Origin: Basidiobolus meristosporus CBS 931.73
Taxonomy: Eukaryota > Fungi > Basidiobolomycota
NCBI GenBank assembly: GCA_002104905.1
Contig: MCFE01000508.1
Location: 950 to 64,949, forward strand
Direction: 5' to 3'
DNA length: 64,000 nt
Part shown: positions 3,011 to 50,900 of the stretch, one piece after another
Layout of the letters: each line of letters starts with the position of its first letter
Numbering within the stretch: the stretch's first letter is position 1
Notes under the pieces: generated by a model
Databases searched by the model: none
What the model was told of the DNA's origin: nothing
What the model saw: only the letters and a program-made list of their open reading frames with translations
Translations under genes and position numbers: made by a program

Positions 3011-3278
3011 AAGTTACTAACGGGATCTTGATGGATGATCTGGGTCAGATCCACCTGCAGGACCAAATTATTCTCATAGGGGTTGAACACAGCTGCATTC
3101 TTATCAAGTCCCTGCTGGTGGGGCTTGAAGTTGTTTTGACTTTGGAAGCTTTGGTACATTGTTATCTCAAAGGATGCTGAACCCAGCACATACTTTTGTT
3201 AAGACGCCAACCAAGTTGGGGATTGTAGCTCAATAGTTTACCCTTGACAAGCTTGTGGCATTATTCCCCATCACATTA

Positions 3279-4010
3279 GACTTGTTCCATTGGATAGTGC
3301 CACATTGAGCCATGAGTGCCAAATGATGCCATAGTGTGCCAGAGAGGTAAAGTGAGCCTATACTTGGCCACAGAGTGTGAAACATAGCTCTGCATTGTCA
3401 TGTAAAGCAGCCCCTGTGTTTCAGCCATTGCGCAGGAGAAAATCCATTTTTTGACCTTTTTTTGTGGATCAATGTAGCTCAGGATGTGTAAGAGCACAGG
3501 AGAACAGAAGATATGCGTCTGGTACTCAATACCCATGGCACTCTGAATCTAGCTCCTGTAGCTTGTATCATGTCACAAAAATGAATGGCACTATCTTGGT
3601 CCACTGGTACTATCTGGCACTATAAGTGCTTTGTATAGATCTTACTTTAGGTCTAATATTTAAATATAGTGCCAGATAGTACCAGTGGACCAAGATAGTG
3701 CCATTTGTTTTTGTGACATGATACAAGCTACAAGAGCTAGATTCAGAGTCCCATGGGTATTGAGTACCAGATGCATATCTTCAATCTGCTTGTGCTCTAA
3801 CACATCCTGCACAACATTGATCCAAAAAAAAAGGTCAAAAAGTGGATTTTCTCCAACACAATGGGTGAAACACAGCGGCTGCTTTGCATGAAGATGCAGA
3901 GCTATGTTTCACACTTTGTGGCCAGGTAGAGGCTCACTTGGCCTCTCTGGCACACTATGGCATCATTTGGCACTCACGGCTCAATGTGGCACTATCTGAC
4001 GGAACAAGTC
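3279..4010. mobile_element. Foldback MITE, copy 1 (732 bp, about 345-bp inverted arms, about 40-bp AT-rich spacer)
   Basis: Ends GACTTGTTCC...GGAACAAGTC, with arms that are reverse complements almost throughout. CATTA lies on both sides, while uninterrupted LTR copies (about 2682 and 9545) have a single CATTA. Confidence 0.95.
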
Positions 4011-4149
4011 CATTATATTAGAGAGAGAACCCAAGAATTCCTAGCAAGCTTTTACCAGAGGTTATTGCACCCAGTGAACACCCCACACACAAAACACTTG
4101 AGAAGTGTTGGACATATCTCTCCCTTGGACTTATACACCACAACACACC

Positions 4150-11469: not shown

Positions 11470-12463
11470 GGACCAACTTATTTGTCATAGGTTATTTTCA
11501 TCAAAAGCATCTGGTATATAGTAGACTTGTTCTGTTTGATAGTTCCCCATTCAGCCATGAGTGCCAAATAGTGCCATTGCATGCCAGAAAGGCATAGCAG
11601 ACCTAAACTTGCCAACAGCGTGTGAAACATAGCTCTTCATCATGAGGCAAAGTAGCCCCTGTGTTTCACCCAATATGCTGGAGAAAATCTATTTTTTGAC
11701 CTTTCTTTTGTATCAATGTTGTGCAGGATGTGTAAGAGCACAGAAGGACTGAAGACATGCATCTGGTACTCAATACCTTTGGCACTCTGAATCTGGCTCC
11801 TGTGGCTTGTATCATATCACCAAACTGCATGGCTCCATCTTGGTCCACTGGTACTATCAGACTCTATAACTAAATATTAGCCCTAAAGTAAAACTTATAT
11901 AAAGCACTTATAGTGCCAGAGAGTATCAGTGGACCAAGATAGTGCCATGCATTTTTGTGACATGATACAAGCTACATGAGATAGACTCATAGTGCCATGG
12001 GTATTGAGTACCAGATGAATGTTGTGATTTCTTTTGTGCTCTTATATTTCCTACATAGCATTGGTCCAAAAAAAAAGTCACAAAATGGATTTTCTCCAGT
12101 ACAATGGGTGAAGCACAGGGGCAGCTTTGCATGAAGATGCAAAGCTATGTTTCACACTCAGTGGCCAGGCATAAGCTCACCAGGCCTCCCTGGCACACTA
12201 TGGCATTATTTGGCACTCATGGCTCAATGTGGCACTATCCTACAGAACAGGCCTAGTACATGAAGTAACTCAAAAAAGCCCAATGAGCCCCAGACCTTGC
12301 ACACATACTCTTAAGACCTTTTGGACAGCACTTATGTGTTTGCTTTGCAAAGACTATGTATGAGCATAAGTACTAATCTTATGTTCAATAAATCATCAGG
12401 TGAAATCCACATTAGATACTTGTCCTCCTAATAACATCTAGTATCCCCACACACTTACAACTG
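11470..12463 (+). repeat. Old copia-A-like LTR remnant split by MITE copy 2; ends approximate
   Basis: TTATTTTCATCAAAA...|CATGAAG...TTCAATAAATCATC...CTTACAAC aligns to the 3' two-thirds of LTR 546-894. Confidence 0.6.
11524..12253. mobile_element. Foldback MITE, copy 2 (730 bp)
   Basis: Colinear with 3279-4010, has long inverted arms and is flanked by TAGTA on both sides. Confidence 0.93.
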
Positions 12464-12738
12464 TAATCAGCATTAGATATCAGGCTGTAGCACCACCTAC
12501 ATATGCATATGAAATACTATTTCTGTTGTGTTGTATTCTTATTAGCTTGAAGCATCTAATACAATAGACATGTTCCGTTGGATAGTGCCACATAGTACCA
12601 GCCTGTTTATAGTGCCATATCAATCTGGCACTATCTGGCACTATAACTTCTACCATCATGTTAGTGGTATGTTATAGTTACTGGTAATTTTACTCAATCT
12701 TACTTATGCTGCTAAGAGTAGTGCTTTCCTTGCTTTAT

Positions 12739-13530
12739 TTACTCTTCATAATGCTCCAGCCACATTTCTCTGAGTGGATGTCTTCTTGTATGAATATACT
12801 GTGCATTGATAAGTATCTTAACTATATTGCCTATTCTGCTGTTTTCTCCTATATATGACTTTCCTCTGTATTTACCTGCCAATAAGCTGAATTTCTTCAG
12901 ATATCCAAATGTATGCTCTACCCTCACTCTGAAATGCTTAAATATCTCATTGTAGAGCTTCTGCTTCCTGCTAAGCACACCATTCTGTGGCTTCCTATAA
13001 GCTGTGATACATCCTAATCTCTGACAATCCTCTCCTATATGGGCTAAGTCTGCCATACATTTCTCCCCTCTACTGAGTTCTGGATGATTCTCTACCCAGA
13101 GTGCTTTGTTATGCCTACTTCCAGCAAATGGCCTACTAAACCAGATGATGTTACCCTCTATGCCAGACAGTGGTTGAAACTTCACACAGTGTGCCTTGTA
13201 CTTGCCAGCATAGAAGTGTCTCTGCCCTCTAGAAGGTCTGTTAATCCTGACTGGGAAGGTATCCAAAATACTCCTTATATGGAACCTGTTGCTGAGCAAT
13301 CTGTGATATGGAAGTCTATTGGAGCTTCTGAACCTAGTATTCCAAGCTTGCTCTAAGTCATTGATACCCTCTGCAAGGTGGTTCTCCATTGCTGTCAGCT
13401 GGGAATGAAAGCTTCTAGGACTTTTGTTGCCATGGATAGTGGGATGAAACCTTGTAAGGCAATAGTTCTTGTGGTAGCAGAGAAGCTTTACATGGGATCT
13501 CCTTAAGTAGATTGGGGTAGATGGACCGCA
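12739..13530 (-). pseudogene. DDE_Tnp_4-type (PIF/Harbinger, ISL2/IS5-like) transposase, N-terminus cut by the copia B insertion
   Basis: The frame is open for 263 codons up to the LTR junction. Motifs ILDTFP...RP...FYAGKYKAHCVKFQ, GSRHN (usually GSxHD), ADLAHIG, RKP...L...YN and RVRVEHTFG. Confidence 0.85.
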
Positions 13531-13534
13531 TTAC

Positions 13535-16500
13535 TGTTGAAATAATTGGGAGTCCACCTAATTATTGATATATTATGAGCTAGCACTTAGTGAAATGATA
13601 TATTTTAGATTATCAACATGGAAATTAGTTTGTAAGATATTTACCAATTATTAGTAATTAGAGAAGTACAAAATTTTAGGAAAGTCTGAAACTTGTCCAA
13701 ATGAGCTGAAACTTGGCACATGTACTCCTGAGACTCCCCTAATAATGGCCAAATAGTCACATTTACGCAGTTCTGCAATAAGTATAAATACTGTGTTGCA
13801 ACTCAATAAAACATCAAGTGAATATCATGGAAATCTTCAAATTCTCCAATTCACTTCCAATATATCTCTCTAATATTTAAACAGGTTATGAGCCCCAAAC
13901 TTGCTTTATCTTGGTTGCCTACTTTGCTTTAGTACTGTGTCTTTATTCTGGAGAAAGACCGCCTGGTCTACCTGAAGTTACAAAAGACAGAAAAGTACTA
14001 CCGCTGCAAAGAGCTGCTAGATGGATATATTGTTTTGGAGAGAGAGGCCTTTGCCCTTAAAGAAGACACTAAGCAAAGAAAAAGGTCATATGTCAAGGAG
14101 ATTATGTTGGACAAATTTCAAAAGTTATGGAATATGCAGAACAATGAAGGTTTGAGAAAATGCGTAATCCCAGCAAGGAGTCAACATCAATAAGGGGCAT
14201 CTTACATGATATATGTATTAATGCTATGATCCTTATTATCACCACATGATGGATCTATATTGAAGATCCACAGTTGAGTTTGCTGACAGATATATGGATC
14301 AGCTTGCCCAAACTCTGAGGATCAAAATGATATATAATACCTATATATTTGGCCAAAGATCAGGGATCTCAGATATGCCAACTTAGGAGTGGTACGCATG
14401 ATATATCAGTGGTACTATTTCCATTACCAATGATCCTGAGGCTCTGTGAGACACTTATTAGACAAGCTACATGTCTACATCAAGTATCAGATACAGTGGG
14501 AGGAGATACATCCATATTTGTTGAAGCATGGAATTTCTACCGCCATCAAGAAAAGTGCTGCCGGAGACCTTGACCAAAGTATATGCATATAGTCTCTATA
14601 TACACTACAGAATATGCATGAAGTACTATCAAGGAGTGTACTAGTTGCCCTACACTAGTACATATATCACATACATACAGTGATGAAGGATCATTTATAT
14701 TAACAAGGATCAGATGTTAATCATGCTATTTTGATCAGATCAAGTTACTGACAGCTCCCAGCTATGGGCCAAACTGCAATGATGATATCTGCCACCAAGA
14801 TGCTGAGAGAAATGGCTTTCTAAGGTAGTTTATTTGATCAAACTTGATCAAGCCTGTCAAAAGTTATGCCAGATCTAAATGGATGACTGATTTGGTGGAA
14901 ACATCTCAGAATAGATATGTTTTGAGGACAGGAGGTTCCTGAACACTCTGGGAGATCTAACAAACCATGGATATGATACCTGTATGGTCCAGATCTAGAT
15001 CAATAAGGAAATTCCAGCAACCAGCATCTTTAAGACCAGATACGGAACAAAAACCTACCGCCAATAAGTTGCCAGTTTCTAAATGGGAAGGTGATATGTA
15101 GGCCAGATTTGAACTATCTAGCACACCAGATATGATCCAGCTATCCTACCACACAAGGATAGTGGAGTATTGTTGCTAAGGAAAGCAGCAGAGCAGTCCA
15201 AGAGAACCTATGTACTCAGAGGCAACAGCACAATTATGGTAAACAATGAAGTCAACTTACTTGCAGTGGAGGCTAGAGAAGTGGTACAAAGGGCCAACCT
15301 AAGGGTTATAATGGGTCCAGTAGAGCATGGACTTGTCTATTTGCACTGTCAACCAAGCTCTATGCTGGAAAGTTCTATCAGAAGTAACAGTGGCTTATCA
15401 GAGCCATTATGGTAGATTTACGCAATTGGAAAGTGCCAGATCAGGTTGTACTATTCAAGTGCAATAGTACATATGAGACCATATCTATCCTGTTTAGGAT
15501 TAGGCCTCTATGAATAGCTGCCAATCAAGCTGTGGTATGCTGTGATACCAAATCAAGCCTATCAAGATGCAAAGGGAAGATCTGAATACCGTAACAGTGA
15601 TATCAGTCCAGGAAAGTTATGCCTAGATCAGAAGGATATATATGATCTATCTCAGTCAGTTTTAGAAGGTAGGAAGCACCAGAAGACATAGCTTCAGTGG
15701 GAGTACAATATCCCAGATCAGGAATGGAGAAATGCTAGGCTAGATACCATTGAAGGGACTAGTCTGGAAGAGGAAATACTTTGTCAAGCGTCAAAGAATA
15801 AGGCAACTACAATGCTGACCAATTGTTGGTCTCAGCAGATCATATATGGAGTATATGAGGAAAGTTACTATCCAGATCCAGTTATGGATATACGGAGGAT
15901 AGTCTAAGTGAATTAGACTATAGACCGGAACTGTGGATGATCCAGATCTACTGGAGAAAAGACCACATCCTAACTTTGCCAATTATTGACCAATTTTACT
16001 CGAATAAGAAATAGCAGATAGCCTGAGAATGCAGCTCTCTGATGATACAAACTATGCTGGGATTCAATCAGTATCTAAAAAGTTTTACTCCGATCAAATT
16101 GATGATTCTCATTCATAGATATTTGTGATGAGATCAGAGTTCAGACTCAAAGCAATTTGATCTGAAGTATGTAATTAACAGTATGGACTTATACTTAGTT
16201 ATTACAGATAATATGCAATCATTAACATATATTGGAGAATACATTAGTCCAATGGGTTAGATGGTTAATTGCAGGTTTAATTTCAACCGCAAGATACAAA
16301 ACACCACAGCAGTTCATAAGTATATGAACATATTATGTGAGTGGGAGTGTTGAAATAATTAGGAGTCCACCTAATTATTAATATATTATGAACTAGCACT
16401 TAGTGAAATGATATATTTCAGATTATCAATATGGAAATTAGTTTGTAAGATATTTACCAATTATTAGTAATTAGAGAAGTACAAAATTTTAGGAAAGTCT

Positions 16501-16638
16501 GAAACTTGTCTAAATGAGCTGAAACTTGGCACATGTACTCCTGAGACTCCCCTAATAATGACCAAATAGTCACATTCACGCAGTTCTGCAATAAGTATAA
16601 ATACTGTGTTGCAACTCAATAAAACATCAAGTGAATAT
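13535..16638 (+). mobile_element. Ty1/copia family B, non-autonomous derivative; 3' LTR truncated
   Basis: 5' LTR 13535-13883, PBS GGTTATGAGCCC, PPT GTGAGTGGGAG, 3' LTR 16348-16638. The 2.46-kb interior has no long ORF but keeps an RNase H trace (HRYL..D...KQFDLKYV). Confidence 0.88.
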
Positions 16639-16886
16639 TTGGCGCAATCAGCTTTATTTATCTGATTTGCCATGCATTATGATTAAATCTCCACCAAATG
16701 CCATGTATCCCATCATTATGTTGCAAAAATCATCCTTAAACGATGACTGGGTATTTTTACTGATGTTTTATTTACAAGTCTATAATCAAATAGGAAATCT
16801 TCAATGCAATCCAAGATGCATCATGCATAATATATGGAAAATTCAACAATCACTTTGTTTTCCAATATATTTTATATAAGACCAGG

Positions 16887-17330
16887 TTGATGCCAATACA
16901 CCCCTGTATAAGTATCCAAATCTGTTACTATGGTCCCTATACCAAGTCTCAACTCATCATTAGTTCAACCAGACAAAACCCATCCCCCAGCTCTGAAGCA
17001 TGGTCCAAACCGGAAAAGACAATGTTGGATCCGTTCAAGTTCTTGCCAAATGATTTCAGTATGTCCCAAGTGTCTATGATGAGCCTTCATCCAGATATTT
17101 GGGCACTACTCATTAATCTAGCAGAACCAGATACCTTGGAGAGTTGACAGAGATGGAAGAACCTGAGTAGAAAGCTGTGGCATGAGTTCTACATCAAGAT
17201 GCCAGTGGTTGTATGTAAGAAGAAATATAACAATACAAGTATTGAAATCAAGAATGAGGTGAGAGTGGGGGATTTGATCAGGAAGCTGTGCAGGAACAAT
17301 TTTGCACGCAATTTGCACAGTACGGGCTAG
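16887..17330 (+). pseudogene. Second gene of the Harbinger-like element, Myb/SANT (trihelix)-like; right end approximate
   Basis: Reads WSKPEKTML...RWKNLSRKLWHEFYIKMPVVVCKKKYNN with one TGA that could come from CGA. It fits W-x2-L-S-x2-L...C-K-x-K-[YW]-x-N. The same frame is kept in the second copy at 21330-21640. Confidence 0.5.
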
Positions 17331-18975
17331 ACATGTTTGTTTGTGCCTCAACTTTGGGAACCAAAGAGATTTTGAAAGAGCTTTTGCCTCAAACTACTAA
17401 TGTATTACATGATATATTAGTAGAGCAAAGTGGCTTCCAGGAGCAATATACAAAGGACTCATCCAGGCAACAGTTGCAAAGTATTAGACAGAGGGTAAGT
17501 GAATACTTTCAGGAATCAGAAGGTGAGCTTCAAGAGGAAGAATACAGACTGCAAGCAACATTGTCTAGATTGCTCTAACATGCCTTGTTGGATTCCTTAC
17601 CATCCCTTGCAGCTTCAGCACACCAGCGCATGTCAGTCCAAACTACACCAACACCCTTCACAAGAGCGCCTTGCATAGACTCAATGTGTATTGGGTCAAC
17701 TTGTGCACTTCAGAGCAAGACCACCAGAACCTGCCAAGCTGCTCAAAAAGACAAGAGTTGATTGGAGCAGGCCCAGTTGCGTCAACAAGCAGCATCACAT
17801 TGAACTCAGCCAAGGGCCATGCCAGCACATCAAGTTGCATCTGCATGTGCCATTACACCTGACCATCAGCAAGTTTCTTCTGGTGAACTGACAGTTGATG
17901 ACCCACATGAAGTGCCTCCACCACCAGAGCCTTTGGCAAGTAAAAGAATGCATCAGCGCGTAGCACTGCAGGCTGGCTCAGTTGCATCATATGGTGAAAT
18001 TCAGTGCGGCCAAGCTGCAGCATTTGCACTCATCAACTAGGAGACAAAATACTGACTACAAATACATAAGTAGCCAAGAGGATAGTCAACAAGAAAGTAG
18101 TTTAGGTGTGCAAAGTGAATCACTACCAAATGGTTCAGTAGTAATCCCTGTGAGAAAAAAGCCTAGGAGAAGATGATGCAATAGCATTGAATTGCTATTA
18201 TTTGTAATGATCCAAACAACACATTGTTTTGTGATCTGCATCAAGCCATTGCAAATCAGTGATCACTAAATTTTTGATATAAGCAATATTAAGATTGTCT
18301 CACATTTGACACTGGACCCCTATAAATAAACACCCTACATATGTATACATTATCTGTGGCACCAGTGCAGCTATTTGATCTGATTTGCATCATACAATTG
18401 GTTGCATGCTAGCTATGACACCCTGTTCAATCACTAGGATCAGGAATTTACTTGCTTAATGGGCAAAATGGAATATTTGATTGCAAATCAGGTAACTTGT
18501 GTATTGGTCAAAGAGCCAATTGGGGTTGACTCCTTCAGGATACTTTTGGACCAATTAACCCCTAGGATACCATCCAATTGGAGGGTTGGTAACCAAAATG
18601 GTAAGTATCAGTGTAGTTTATAGTGTGATATGCACTTATTTCCATTTACATTAAAGAAACATATCCAAATACCGGATTTTACCTGCCATTATAGCAGTAT
18701 CCAATTGCGCACGTGATGCAAACATTACCAGATTTTAGCTACCACAATAGAGGTATCCAATTGCACACGTGATATAAACATTATAAGTGGGTGCAATCAT
18801 TTATGCCAATCTTGTTGTGTCAGATTGTGCCATAGTGTGTAAATTGTCCCACATGGTGCAAAATTATCCAAGAGAGATCCTGCCTACTGATAGCTACAAT
18901 ATTGCACCCAATTGTTCTTTGAGACTGCGGATTGCGCCATGCGCCCTGGCATAGTACAATGGAACAAGTCTAATA

Positions 18976-19860
18976 TGAGGGCTAGTCAACAGTAAGCAAC
19001 AACTGCCAGTATGCTAATATAGAAATTGTTCATTGGGAATCTGATATACTAATAGATATAACTTTCCCCAATAAACTCAATTTGAGGCACAGATATACTA
19101 TAGCCAGTGTTTCTCACCTCAACAGTAGTGTTGTGACCTTTTGTCAACTATAGGGCTTATTTACCTTATAGTAACTTCTCTGACCAAAATGTGGTAGTTA
19201 TTGTCTAGAACTTAGATTGGATTTTAGTAAGCTTTGCAGTCTCTTTACTAATACACTACCAGTCAAATTTGGATCACTCTACAATGCAAGTGATGCACAT
19301 GAAGTCTTGTAACCAAAAAAATTGCACTTGTAGTGGGACAATTCTGGGTAGAGAAGCTCTCATTCATTTTTCAGCATGAAAAGTTATATATATGGGAGTT
19401 CTGAAGGATCAAAGTTTTGGGGCAAATCTACCAGCAATACACATGATGCAAAGCCAAAATTCTGATGTGGCACAGATTGGACATAGGTGCAGCACCTGTG
19501 TAAACTTCACATGATTGGATTGGCTTGCCAAAAGTTACATGCAATCAAAGTTGCCATAGAAATCCTGGCAACAAAGGTCCAGTATATATGGTTATTAGAC
19601 TCTTTTGGTCACAACTCCATAAATACTATCTCAAAGAGTTGTAGCTTGAAGTATGAGCTGGCTACAGAGTGTTCTGCATGACATAACACTGTTGGGTGGA
19701 TTGCTTGTCAGGGTTTTGAGGTTTTGTTGCTCAAAGTTGGAAATTCTTGATAATTCATCTGTGTGTTACAATAGTAAAAAGCACAACAAAAAAGTGAGTG
19801 CAATATGGTCTTGAGATATAGTAGTAATGGAATACACTCCATTACCTCACTTCTCTTAGA
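18976..19860 (-). repeat. Repeat family X, copy 2 (continues from 12470-12566; lacks the tandem array); ends approximate
   Basis: Direct homology to 48700-49475 plus 50547-50880, with the array segment absent. Confidence 0.7.
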
Positions 19861-19897: not shown

Positions 19898-20067
19898 AAC
19901 CTGTTCTGTTAGATAGTGCCACATTGAGCCATGCATACCAAACAGTTCTAGAGTGCACCAAAGTGGCATGGCAGACCTATATTTGGCCACACAATGTGAA
20001 ACATAGTTTTGCATCCTCATGCAAAGCCGCCCCTGTGTCTTACCAGCTACACTGCAGAGAATCTATA
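19898..20067 (+). mobile_element. Truncated left arm of the foldback MITE
   Basis: AACCTGTTCTGTTAGATAGTGCCACATTGAGCC... matches the first 170 bp of the MITE arm. Confidence 0.8.
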
Positions 20068-21698
20068 GACTTGTTCTATTCTACAATGCCAGGGCATGCA
20101 GCACAATCCTCAGTCTCTAAGAACAATTGGGCACAATATTATAGGTACCAGTAAGCAGGGTTGCACTTGGACAATTTTGCACCATGCAAGACAATCTTGA
20201 GCCCTATGGCACAGTCTGATACAATGAGGCTGGCACAAATGATGGTGCCGGCTTGTAATGTTTATATCACATGCACAATTGGATGCTGCTATTATGGTAG
20301 GTAAAATCCTGTATTTGCATATGTTTCTTTGATGTAAATGGAAGCAAATGCATATCACACTATATATTACTATGATACTTACTATTTTGGTTACCATTAC
20401 TCCAATTGGATGGTATCTCAGTGGCTAGTTGGTCCAAAAGTATTCTGAAGCTGTCAGCCCCCTCTTGGCTCTTTGACCAATACACAAGCTACCTGATTTG
20501 GCATCATATATCCTATTTTGCCTATTGAGCAATTAGATCCCTGATCCTAGTGACTGGACAAGGTGTCATTGCTAGCATGCAACCAATCAAACAGGTCCAT
20601 AACGGATCCAATGGCTGCACTGGTGTAACATGATGTATATTTGCAAAGTGTTCATTTATAGAGGTTCTGTCTTAAATGTACAACAACCTTGATATTGCTT
20701 AAATCAAAAATTTAGTGATCACTGATTTGCAATGGCTTGAGTTGGATAGCAAAAAAAATGTGTTGTTTGGATCATGGCAAATATAGCAATTCAATGCAAT
20801 TGCATCATCTTCTAGGCTTTTCTCTCACCGGGATACTACTGAAGCATTTGGTAATGATTCACTCTGTATGCCTAAACTGCTTCCTTGTTGACTGTCTTCT
20901 TGGCTACTTGTGTATTGTAGTCTGTATTTTGCCTCCTAGTTGATGAGTGCAATGCTGCAGCTTGGCCGCACTTAATTGCGCCAGATGATGCTACTGAACT
21001 GGCTTGCAGTGGCATAGTCTGGACTAATGTGTGCTGGCATGCTGAAGTTGCAAGGGATGGTAAGGAATCCAGCAAGGAGTGCTGGCACAATCTAGATGCT
21101 GTTGCTTGCAGTCTGTATTCTTCCTCTTGAAGTTCACCTTCTGATCCCTCAAAGTATGCACTTACCCTCTGTCTAATACTTTGGAACTGTTGCCTGGATG
21201 AGTCCTGTGTATATAGCTCTTGGAAGCCACTTAGCTCTACTAATATATCATGTGATACATTAGTTATCTGAGGCTAAAACCCATTCAAATCTCTTTTGTT
21301 CCCAAAGTTAAGGCACAAACAGATGCATCCAGCTTCTACTGTGCAAATTGTGCACAAAATTGTTCCTGTGCGGCTTCCTCATCAAATCCCCCCACTCCCA
21401 GCTCATTCTTGATTTCAATACTTGCCTTGTTATATATCTTCTTACATACATCTGCTGGCATTGCAATCTAGAACTAATGCCACAGCTTTCTACTCAGGTT
21501 TTTCCATCTCTGTCAACTCTCTAAGGTATCTAGTTCTACTAGATTAATGAGTAGTGCCAAAATATCTGTATGAAGGCTCATCAAAGACACTTGCGCCATA
21601 CTAATTCATTAGGCAAGAACTTGAACAGATCCAGCATTGACTTTCCTGGTTTGGATTACACTTGTGAGCTGGGGGATGATCTTTGTCTGGGTTGTACT
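20068..21698 (-). mobile_element. Second, inverted and truncated copy of the Harbinger-like element (right end plus ORF2)
   Basis: Starts GACTTGTTCTATT and is the reverse complement of about 16963-18970 with deletions. Cut at 21699 by a gypsy LTR. Confidence 0.85.
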
Positions 21699-22124
21699 TG
21701 TTATGATCTGCCACTTGAATGTTTAAGTTAGATCAGTTTTTAGTCAAATCAATTAGTATATGTTTAGGTTATCAGTATATCAGTATTATCTATGAAATCA
21801 GTAGCATTAGTCAGCAAATGAATCAGCAGATCCTTATCAGACAGAAATAGATATATTCAGTAGGATCTTATTGGGTGATGATGATGCAATCAAATGAGTC
21901 ATCAGCCACAACCTACATTAGGAAATACAATTAGTCAGCAATTGATCTGGCAAAATGTATATAAGGAGCTGCTGGAACCTCAATAAAAATTGGTTCAAGT
22001 TTTAGTGAATACAATACTAGCTAAACTCCCTATTCCTCTACAACTCTTATGCCAAGACTTGTAACGTTGGTAGCAGCAATAACCAGAAACCTCCCTCCTG
22101 AAGAAAGAAGAAACCACCCTCAAG

Positions 22125-42750: not shown

Positions 42751-44313
42751 TTGAAGTGATTGGGATATAGTAGTAGCTGCAATTTGACTTTTCTTCCTAT
42801 CTTCCACGTTTCTGCTCCATAGGAAACTCCCAAAAGGTGAAGCAAGGCCCAATATTCTCCACGTACCATGCAGGATGGAGTGGAGAATGGACACAGTAGC
42901 AGCAGAGATCTAAGTATTCAGCTTTATATTTGTAGTATAGCCATTCAAATACATTTACAAACTCTTCACACAACAGCTATAGATGCATCAAGTAGGCATT
43001 GGTGATCTGCTTCTGGATAAGCATTCCTACAATGTCCACATATGACTCCCAATGCTTCCATTGTACTCTTGGTTGCAATGGCTTCAGAACACCACTTGAA
43101 TAAATACGTAACCAGTTTATCGAGTCTTTGCATTTGTGTTGTTGCACATGAATATGAATATTAATTGGAGCTCATGAGAAGTACTTAGGGTAGTGGATAC
43201 TCTGTAATATCTTGCCAATTCTTTCAAATTTCTCTAGTATCTCAAAGGGCTCATTTAGCTTGAAACGCCCAAGGTACAACTTGATTATCAGTATAGGGAT
43301 ATTGTTGAAAAGCAAATGCATTTCTCCCAGTGGAAAGTGTTTGCTCCAACAGATATCATCTATCTTAAGTGTCTCCAGTTTCCCATTGATTCCATATTCT
43401 GGCCAATGGTATATAGCTTGCCAACCTTGCTGCAATTGCATGCTGACTTCTGTACATTCTCTCTGTGGAAAGATGATGTTCTTAGTGCTGGTGTTTAGGT
43501 AAGAATAATGTGTGTGAGTTATGGAGTAAGTCCCCTGGATCTCACACATTTGACAGCAATACCGTCCATTGTGCCTGAAAAAACCTGCTATCTGCTGATG
43601 GCTGGGGTATTTCCAATGCATATAATACTATGCACTTTTATATAATGGCTATTAAATGTTATCCTACTGGAAAGCATACAAAATTCATCCAGCAATGGAT
43701 ACAGGTTGCTACCCAGATTGGACAGTGATTTAGGTCCAGATACCAGTGGGACTACCATCAGATTATTGCTCTAATACTGTAAGATGGGCAGCAGATTCAG
43801 ATCAATGAGAATCAGTGGCCAGTAAGATTTGCTGGTAAAGTACTTGTTTAATGGGAATCTATCAATTGCTAAGGCAAAGGCATGGCCATACATACCTTCA
43901 AAGTAGCCCTTGCTTCCTAGCTGCTTGTAATGTTTGCCATCAAATATATTGGATATGTTTTTGCTTGATTTATACTGAGTGTGGTACTGTATAGCTTTCC
44001 AATATTTATTGGACTACATCAGCTTCCTCAGACAGGGAATGACTGGAATATATCCAGAGTGTGAACAATGTTTTCTCTTAATGGTGGTGGATTTCTGAAA
44101 ATTTGGGCATGTTGCAATGGTAGCATTTTTGAATGTGAATGCCATGCAACTGTTACACATGCTGGAATTGAGACAGTCTCTGGATCACATGTTGCCATCC
44201 ACATGATGGTTGTCCACTTATACCATGTACATGCTATGTTGCATCCTGGTATGACTTGGCAAGAAGTAGTAATAAATCCTCAAAGACCCCAATACTGATA
44301 TTAGTGGAAACAC

Positions 44314-48639: not shown

Positions 48640-50900
48640 TTGCAAGACTTGTTCTGTTGAGTTATAATTAGCTTGGGGTGTGTTCTACAATGTAGAGGCT
48701 AATCAACAATGTACAACAACTTCCAGTAAGCTAGTATTAAAATAGTTTATTGGGTGCTTGATATACTGATAGAATATAAAACTCTCACCAATATCTTCAA
48801 TCTTAGGCTCAAAATATATTCTAGGCAATGTATCTCACTTCTACAGCAGTATTCTGACCTTCTGTTGACCATAGGGCTTATATACTTTTATAGCAACTAT
48901 TCCTTATATGGAAGTCATTTTTTTCTTAGAAAAAAATATTTCCTAATGTGGAAGTCCTGAACTCCACTTTAAACTGAAAGGGTGTCTAAAGGGGTGTCTT
49001 TAAAATAAAGGGGCTTCTTGTAGTGGTCTCTAAAGTGGACTTTACACTACAGGGTGCCTACAGGGGCTACTTTAGAGTAAGGGGGCTTCTTAAAGGGGTC
49101 TCTAAAGGGGTCTTTAGAATAAAAAGGTGTGTTCAGAGTGAAGGGGTTTCTTAAAGGGGACTTTTCCAACAGAAAAGTAGGAGTTTTTGTAGAGCTTTTA
49201 TTGGAATCTTGTGAACTTTGCAATCTCTTTACTGATGTAGTTTTAATCAAAGTTAGATTACTCAACAGAGTAAGTAATGCAGGCAAAGTCTTTTAACATT
49301 TGGACTAGTAATTATAGTGTGGAGACTCTGGAAAGAGAGCTCCATTATATTTTTCAGCTGGGGAAGCCATATATACAAAAATGTGAAGGATCCAAGTTTT
49401 TGGGCAACTGCACTAGCAATGCATGAGATACAAGGCTAAAATCTTGCAGTTGCAATGTTAAGACATAGGTGCTGCTGTGGTGGTGTATAGGTCCAAGGGA
49501 GAGATATGTCCAACACTTCTCAAGTGTTTTGTGTGTGGGGTGTTCACTGGGTGCAATAACCTCTGGCAAAAGCTTGCTAGGAATACTTGGGTTCTGTCTC
49601 TAATCTAATGTGAAGGGGAATAAAGCCACAAGCTTCTCAAGGGAAAACTATTGAGCTACAATCCCCAACTTAGTTGGCATCTTAACAAAAGTATGTGCTG
49701 GGTTCAGCGTCCTTTGAGATGACATTGTACTAATGCTTCCAAAGTCAAAACTACTGTAAACTCCACCAGCAGGGACTTGATAAGAATGCAGCTGTATTCA
49801 ATAGTTACAAAGACAGAAAAGTGTCTTTGCCTGTACAAGAACAAACTTGGGAAAGAATCAAATATAATAAAAGATGCCAACTCTGAGTATTCCATGTAAG
49901 TAGTACCTCCAAGGTCAGTTGGCTGTCAGCACGGTTTCCTGGGAGTGTCCTGCGGTCTAGGGTTGGAAGTTCAGGTAGCAGCAGGTAGCAATGATCACAC
50001 TAATCAACAAGTTGGTATATTGATAAAAGGGTTGATGATTTATTGTTGAGGGATAGCCTCCCTTATATACTTTTCTCACTGGCTAAGTGATTACTAATCA
50101 TGGTGTTCCAGAAGGTTCCAGATATCAATAGAAATCTTAATGACATCAGAATGACCCAAGAATGTTCCAAGTAGGTGCTGGAAGATTCTAAGTGGCACAG
50201 CACATCCAACCAATCAGGAATCAGTATTCTGAGACTTGTGTAACATAGGGATACCATATATGGTATGGAAATGGTAGGGATGGTGACACAGGTTGATCAT
50301 GTGTTACAGGTACTGGCGCGGGTACTTGCCAAATATAGATGTACTTATAGCTAGTAATCTTACATAAGGTGAGAGGTAACTCATGCAATAAGGTAAGCAG
50401 GTGTGATAGTCAACTGGCTTATGGGATAGTACTGATTGGGTAAGACAAATGGGATAAAACTGAAATAAGTGTAGTAGAGATATAGGGAAGTAGAAAATAG
50501 GGGAATGAGCACATCTGTCAGTGGGTGTCACTGTCACCCCACTACACCGCACCTGTGGTAATATCATGAAACTTGATTGGCTGGTTCAGAAGTTACATGC
50601 AATCAAAGTCACCATAGTAATCCTAGCAATAGAGGCCTAATATATATAGTAATTGGACTCTTTTGATCAAAACTCCCTAAGTACTGCCTCAAACAATCTG
50701 TAATTTGAAACATGTGTGTGCTACCGAGTGTTCTGCATGACATTATTTTCCTTGGTGGATTACTTGTTTGGGTCTGAAGCTTTTGTTCTCAAAGTGAGAA
50801 ATTCTTGATCTTTCATTTGTGGGTTACAATGGCAAAAGCAAAATAAAGAAATAAGTGTAATATTAGTTTTGAGATATTGTGGTAATGTAATACTTTCAGT
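48640..50900 (-). repeat. Repeat family X, copy 3, with the tandem array at about 48965-49165; ends approximate
   Basis: Homologous to X copies 1 and 2, and splits the C3 transposase. Confidence 0.7.
49476..50546 (-). mobile_element. Solo LTR (1071 bp) of gypsy family T
   Basis: Reverse complement of 1747-2817, with flanks CTGC/CCGC. The host rejoins as in 19480-19500. Confidence 0.93.

Follow-up and report, generated by a model that had tools for sequence, protein, structure and literature searches.

A decayed two-gene DNA transposon, very probably of the Pangu (Harbinger2) group, in the fungus Basidiobolus meristosporus

We analysed a stretch of 64,000 nucleotides from Basidiobolus meristosporus CBS 931.73 (Basidiobolomycota; assembly GCA_002104905.1, contig MCFE01000508.1, positions 950 to 64,949), which we refer to as the window and number from its first letter. 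Positions 12566-18971 are very probably an inactive copy of a cut-and-paste DNA transposon with two genes, belonging to the Pangu group (Harbinger2 in Repbase) within the PIF/Harbinger-ISL2EU-Spy (PHIS) superfamily. Its target-site duplication (TSD) is a 3-bp ANT and not the 5-bp Y-A-N-T-A proposed in an earlier reading made from the sequence alone (the sequence-only reading); the 5-mers are ANT read one base out of register. The data support a PIF/Harbinger-IS5-related two-gene transposon with long coding-type, truncated and miniature inverted-repeat (MITE) copies in one window, and the element is a new family within an already described group.

The element starts with AGAC and ends with GTCT, and its ends, read inward, are AGACATGTTCCGTTG and AGACTTGTTCCATTG. 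The sequence-only reading had placed GAC(T/A)TGTTCC termini at 12567 and 18970; the inverted termini are real, but the true ends lie one base further out, AGAC at 12566 and GTCT at 18971. The exact string AGACWTGTTCY (AGAC[A/T]TGTTCY) occurs six times in the window against 0.21 expected, two of the occurrences forming the inverted pair at 12566/18971, and copies of the family carry AGACTTGTTC ends. The subterminal motif ATAGTGCC is found 16 times against 2.3 expected, every time within a family member, and is also present in the element end of the P0001 contig (relative L001); it is a candidate binding site. The right-end motif ATTGCRC is not kept in the truncated copy C (Table 1) and was dropped as a candidate.

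The minus-strand open reading frame (ORF) at 12742-13530 matched Pfam DDE_Tnp_4 with an E value of 5e-18, its sole significant Pfam match. This agrees with the transposase type and strand given by the sequence-only reading, whose motifs YxGKxKxHxxKxQ, ADxxxIG and RVxVEH are present as GKYKAHCVKFQ, ADLAHIG and RVRVEH. The catalytic D, D and E residues are all retained and do not vary across 17 relatives. The closest relative, P0001 from a Logan assembly, is an intact protein of 294 aa with 56% identity to the window protein, and from the alignment to it the first ~32 residues of the window protein were judged to be missing. Neither the transposase nor the pieces of the second gene matched THAP, HTH_Tnp_4 or YqaJ in Pfam.

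The second ORF (ORF2), likewise recognised on the plus strand by the sequence-only reading, survives as decayed pieces at ~16887-18176. Seven pieces matched no Pfam family, and no Myb/SANT or MADF match was obtained at E <= 1, a weak negative because the gene is decayed. The ORF2 region is also broken in copy C. Similarity between the window ORF2 and that of relatives was undetectable, and a weak N-terminal motif is all that the relatives' ORF2s share among themselves. In Harbinger elements the ORF2 protein is a DNA-binding or import partner, and by analogy the product of ORF2 here may have served in that way.

A long terminal repeat (LTR)-type insertion, together with the loss of the transposase start, disabled the copy, as did a stop codon and frameshifts within ORF2. 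The insertion starts at 13535, one base beyond the in-frame TAA (13531-13533), and carries direct repeats of 291 bp (13535-13825 and 16348-16638) that are 97% identical. Its layout is LTR-like, with TG..CA in the 5' repeat followed by TGG, and a purine tract ahead of the 3' repeat. A search for a target duplication around the insertion (13535-16640) revealed none, and the 3' repeat ends in TT where the 5' repeat ends in CA; together these suggest a deletion at the junction, with or after the insertion, which probably also took the transposase start. The interior of the insertion (14228-16162) contains 31 GATC in 1.9 kb, or 16 per kb, compared with 3.8 per kb window-wide. Minus the insertion, the element would measure ~3.3 kb. 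Truncated and MITE members are thus present, as the sequence-only reading had it, but the autonomous member it listed has ~32 codons missing, the TAA, the 3.1-kb insertion and the ORF2 frameshifts, and no copy within the window could be active.

Relatives of the transposase

A profile search of 1.84 billion representatives identified 2127 relatives, of which 30 reached E <= 1e-30; a word-based protein search found one. We examined the contigs of eleven relatives, together with three short loci from a metagenome scan (5-sequence alignment). Every visible relative end begins AGA[C/G]TTGT, and the terminal 8 bp, AGACTTGT, are conserved across the sampled clade. One end, not both, was seen in L026, and no terminus could be recognised on the contigs of P0003, P0009 and P0010.

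In a quick IQ-TREE analysis of 85 proteins, three bacterial IS5-like proteins included, a branch with support 96 splits 25 rows, among them the bacterial proteins, from 60 rows that hold the window protein along with all the relatives in which AGAC/ANT ends were seen. P0001 and the window protein form a pair at 99. The sequence-only reading had judged the transposase motifs closer to bacterial ISL2/IS5 proteins and had called for a hidden Markov model search and a phylogeny. The DDE_Tnp_4 match and the separation from the three bacterial proteins emerged from these. The nearest NCBIfam model, transpos_IS5_4, matched the window protein weakly, with 33 bits where its family cut-off is 140. Streptomyces and cyanobacterial IS5-like proteins are 25-38% identical to the window protein. 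The tree contains no named Pangu, Harbinger, Nuwa, ISL2EU or Spy reference proteins, which weighs against our assignment; the group was assigned from the duplication and the element structure.

It is unlikely that this 60-cluster clade, drawn nearly entirely from environmental contigs, is a distinct PHIS lineage and not Pangu proper, one marked by AGACTTGT, a 7-bp target and chromodomain or possible Tudor-like fusions. Slightly less likely again is an undescribed PHIS lineage, separate from Pangu/Harbinger2, that came to the ANT duplication independently. Such a separate origin would be consistent with a comparison made without named reference sequences, with nearest proteins that all come from environmental or Logan contigs, and with the single relative returned by the word search. 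However, the clade is not isolated, because the exhaustive search returned its relatives in the thousands given above. In addition, Han et al. (2015, PMC4482050) define groups by the composition of the duplication and list no Pangu trait that is missing here, and published Pangu elements adjoin IS5 in trees, as this clade does. The possibly undescribed lineage suggested by the sequence-only reading is not supported. A 3-bp ANT is the defining trait published for Pangu in that paper; a described group already making this duplication was recognised on duplication and element structure, and not by a tree with named references.

Several relatives showed features of their own. One element, the P0011 family, is a 5.9-kb relative found nearly identical in ten soil/peat metagenome and Logan contigs (L002-L006 and L014-L018), and has a third gene of 724 aa, without a Pfam family, beside the transposase and ORF2. 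The C-terminal extension of P0015 matched the Pfam chromodomain (E 9e-11), and four relatives (P0006, P0010, P0018 and P0045) share a W-rich C-terminal tail which, by eye from the alignment, might be Tudor-like. A chromodomain or Tudor-like tail, if true, would hint at chromatin-targeted insertion. The GC-rich distant relative L027 (71-3905; E 6e-16) shares with the window family the first 11 bases, AGACTTGTTCC, of its 22-bp inverted repeats; its flanks are AAC/ATC.

The target-site duplication

Read in the AGAC...GTCT register, the complete window copies are flanked by ATT/ATT (MITE A), AGT/AGT (MITE B) and AAT/AAT (main element). The flank strings of the sequence-only reading are exact: CATTA/CATTA (3274-3278, 4011-4015), TAGTA/TAGTA (11519-11523, 12254-12258), CAATA/TAATA for the main element, and CTATA. 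However, the inverted repeat itself supplies the last left base and the first right base of these 5-mers, its terminal A and T. A 3-bp duplication fits the main element, which would need one mutation under 5 bp. On the window copies alone the two models tie, at one mutation each, and relatives were therefore brought in.

The tally comprised 18 termini. The window supplied 7 of them, and the other 11 lie on contigs of relatives with 35-56% protein identity. Positions 1-8 of the element read A-G-A-[C/G]-T-T-G-T. An A stands at +1, beside GAC, in 17/18 termini; 17 of the 18 open with AG and the remaining one with GG. On the flanking side, T occupies -1 in all the termini (18/18), A occupies -3 in 16/18 and -5 in 15/18, and position -4 has a Y in 17/18, which is C in 11. 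An ANT flank is seen at 16 of the 18 termini. Thus the wider target is a palindrome, about A-Y|ANT|R-T, of ~7 bp. Neither TAA nor TTA flanks any of the 18 termini in the AGAC register. Because the terminal A and T are fixed, with Y before and R after ANT, the junctions read Y-ANT-A and T-ANT-R and so mimic a 5-bp duplication. The relative L003 is a complete 5.9-kb element with ATT/ATT, whose outer bases are unequal (TATTA vs TATTC).

The empty site reported by the sequence-only reading was also recovered, the joined flanks of the element aligning without gaps to 48650-48898 at 75% identity. The empty site has a single AAT, and its TAC AAT GTA agrees with the extended target. It leaves the fifth position undecided, because the occupied right flank also differs from the empty site there.

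Some observations weigh against the 3-bp interpretation. MITE A has a perfect CATTA/CATTA, and a 3-bp model needs a T-to-C change in its last base. The decision on the register, given the tie within the window, rests on relatives from other organisms. ANT itself has exceptions, namely TAT at copy C, GGT at L002/L005 and AAC/ATC at the distant L027, and two complete pairs are unequal at the middle base, L011 (ATT/ACT) and L027 (AAC/ATC), which may reflect chimeric metagenome assembly. Finally, the terminus-like AGACTTGTTCT at 48645 is the start of the host repeat itself, with flank GCA.

We considered two other geometries. If the termini were TAGAC...GTCTA and a 1-nt stagger duplicated N alone at an A-N-T target, the strings and the empty site would be the same as in the 3-bp parse wherever the target is always A-N-T, so that the two are indistinguishable by sequence there; the invariant T at -1 in the first 18 termini is also in keeping with this arrangement. 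We regard it as improbable. The imperfect pairs L011 and L027 differ exactly at N, the sole base a 1-bp model duplicates, and the left flank of L027 ends in C, not T. The PHIS groups named in PMC4482050, in the portions available, and in PMC12730594 duplicate 0, 2 or 3 bp and none 1 bp; for this reason, and since the published convention is ANT, the 3-bp description is kept. The 1-bp geometry that the sequence-only reading had allowed as a formally equivalent and unusual alternative is not supported; in the AGAC...GTCT register the duplication is the 3-bp ANT published for Pangu in PMC4482050.

The 5-nt stagger, with GAC...GTC termini and a duplicated Y-A-N-T-A, is very improbable, even though MITEs A and B have perfect CATTA/CATTA and TAGTA/TAGTA and the main element is off at just one of five positions: under this geometry the base beside GAC should complement the one at -4 on the far side and hence be G in most cases, yet 17/18 termini have A there, compared with 6/18 for the far-side target base (Fisher p = 3e-4). 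In addition, the main element, L003 and L011 each have outer positions that disagree between the two sides; where its host-repeat paralogs have T, copy C has A; and a fixed A/T pair that lengthens the inverted repeat is the simpler account.

Other copies in the window and a possible route of transposition

The features of the window are collected in Table 1. Both foldback MITEs are built from two transposase-side ends, and the final base of MITE A is C, not T. Copy C lies in the orientation opposite to the main element and is ended at 21699 by another repeat.

Table 1. Features of the element, its relatives in the window and the empty site (window positions)
Feature	Position	Strand or orientation	Remarks
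Foldback MITE A	3278-4011		734 bp; arms 88% identical; two left-type ends; ATT at 3275-3277/4012-4014
Foldback MITE B	11523-12254		732 bp; 82-84% identical to A; AGT at 11520-11522/12255-12257
Left TSD copy, AAT	12563-12565		Identical to the right copy (18972-18974) and to the AAT of the empty paralog (48689-48691)
Left terminal inverted repeat, start AGACATGTTCC	12566-12580	plus	~15 bp, 2 mismatches to the right repeat
Four subterminal ATAGTGCC motifs	12582-12644	two direct, two inverted	Candidate protein-binding sites
Transposase remnant, DDE_Tnp_4	12739-13530	minus	263 codons (12742-13530) and stop; D/D/E present; N-terminal ~32 codons missing
In-frame TAA	13531-13533	minus	Directly before the first retained residue; Tyr codon in relative
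Foreign LTR-retroelement-type insertion	13535-16640	plus	3.1 kb; adjoins the transposase remnant
ORF2 pieces	~16887-18176	plus	Several frames; head-to-head with transposase; frameshifted, decayed
Subterminal tandem repeat	18670-18783		56 bp, two copies
Right terminal inverted repeat, end GGAACAAGTCT	18957-18971	minus	
Right TSD copy, AAT	18972-18974		
MITE fragment	19899-20066	plus	168 bp; 74-77% identical to MITEs A/B; copy C inserted into it
Truncated copy C	20067-21698	minus	Retains the ORF2-side end with the ORF2 region; identity to the main element 80-86%; flank TAT
Paralogous empty site, TAC AAT GTA	48686-48694		Within a 75%-identical copy of the host repeat

The element interrupts a host repeat (12517-12565 plus 18972-19843, and 48645-50893 in the other copy) that starts with AGACTTGTTCTGTTG, the terminal 15 bases of the family. 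Compared with the copy at 43847, this repeat forms an insertion of 2.2 kb; the opposite end is not an inverted copy of the first, its flank is GCA and not ANT, and its far end could not be resolved. Across the whole window (1-64000), the observed/expected ratio is 0.07 for CpG and 1.37 for TG and CA. This extreme CpG depletion is the signature of methylation-driven C-to-T decay across a window composed of repeats only.

As a route of transposition, we propose that the ~290-aa DDE transposase of an active copy would recognise the AGACTTGTTCC termini, probably acting together with the ORF2 protein and probably recognising the subterminal ATAGTGCC repeats as well. As the flanks suggest, the excised element would then reinsert into the palindrome A-Y|A-N-T|R-T through target cuts staggered by 3 nt, and repair of the stagger would duplicate ANT. 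The foldback MITEs share only their ends with the element, and hence they would have been moved in trans, presumably through those ends and the ATAGTGCC repeats.

Comparison with known groups

The window element shares the superfamily catalytic domain with ISL2EU, Spy and Nuwa and differs from each in its target. ISL2EU elements make a 2-bp (AT) duplication and usually carry THAP or YqaJ, the transposase often bearing THAP or HTH_Tnp_4 and ORF2 being of the YqaJ type; none of this is seen here. Spy makes no duplication and inserts at AAA/TTT, whereas a 3-bp repeat flanks 3/3 complete copies in the window. NuwaI uses CWG and NuwaII uses TNA within C|TNA|G; neither is seen here.

Similar to canonical PIF/Harbinger elements, the window element has a DDE_Tnp_4-type transposase, two genes, a 3-bp duplication, short inverted repeats and MITEs. 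In contrast to the TWA (TAA/TTA) target and the Myb/SANT or MADF ORF2 of Harbinger, it has ANT and an ORF2 in which no such domain was found. With bacterial IS5 it shares the catalytic domain and, according to PMC4482050, the ANT target. Unlike IS5, it is a two-gene, eukaryotic element, separated in the tree, CpG-depleted and nested among retrotransposons.

Pangu is the name of the group that Repbase lists as Harbinger2 (PMC12730594). According to Han et al. (2015, PMC4482050), Pangu elements make a 5'-ANT-3' duplication, and their inverted repeats are 11-40 bp in length and usually begin with AG or GG. The elements are mostly 2-8 kb long and contain two ORFs, a transposase of 216-537 aa made of the DDE domain only and a mostly motif-less ORF2. 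The ANT target is common to Pangu and bacterial IS5 elements, which adjoin each other in trees. The supplement of that paper gives no terminal sequences for comparison.

Every one of these structural traits is found in the window element. Its copies have a 3-bp ANT duplication and ~15-bp inverted repeats, AGAC[A/T]TGTTCC, starting with AG. There are two ORFs, with a bare DDE_Tnp_4 transposase and an ORF2 without a recognisable domain, both genes being decayed in this copy; the length without the foreign insertion and the affinity to bacterial IS5 likewise fit. At the sequence level it differs as a new family, the nearest protein being the 56%-identical P0001. Three points are not found in the available portions of PMC4482050: the conserved terminal AGACTTGT, the A-Y|ANT|R-T target, and foldback MITEs made of two transposase-side ends. 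The host phylum is absent from the 15 published Pangu host species given there, which is unsurprising, Pangu being already present in plants, fungi and animals. We conclude that Pangu/Harbinger2 is the appropriate annotation for the family, with ends AGAC...GTCT and an ANT duplication of 3 bp, and that no new target-site geometry is involved. The conserved terminal 8 bp and the ~7-bp target preference could be of use in other genomes for locating Pangu elements, with their MITEs, and for setting their limits.

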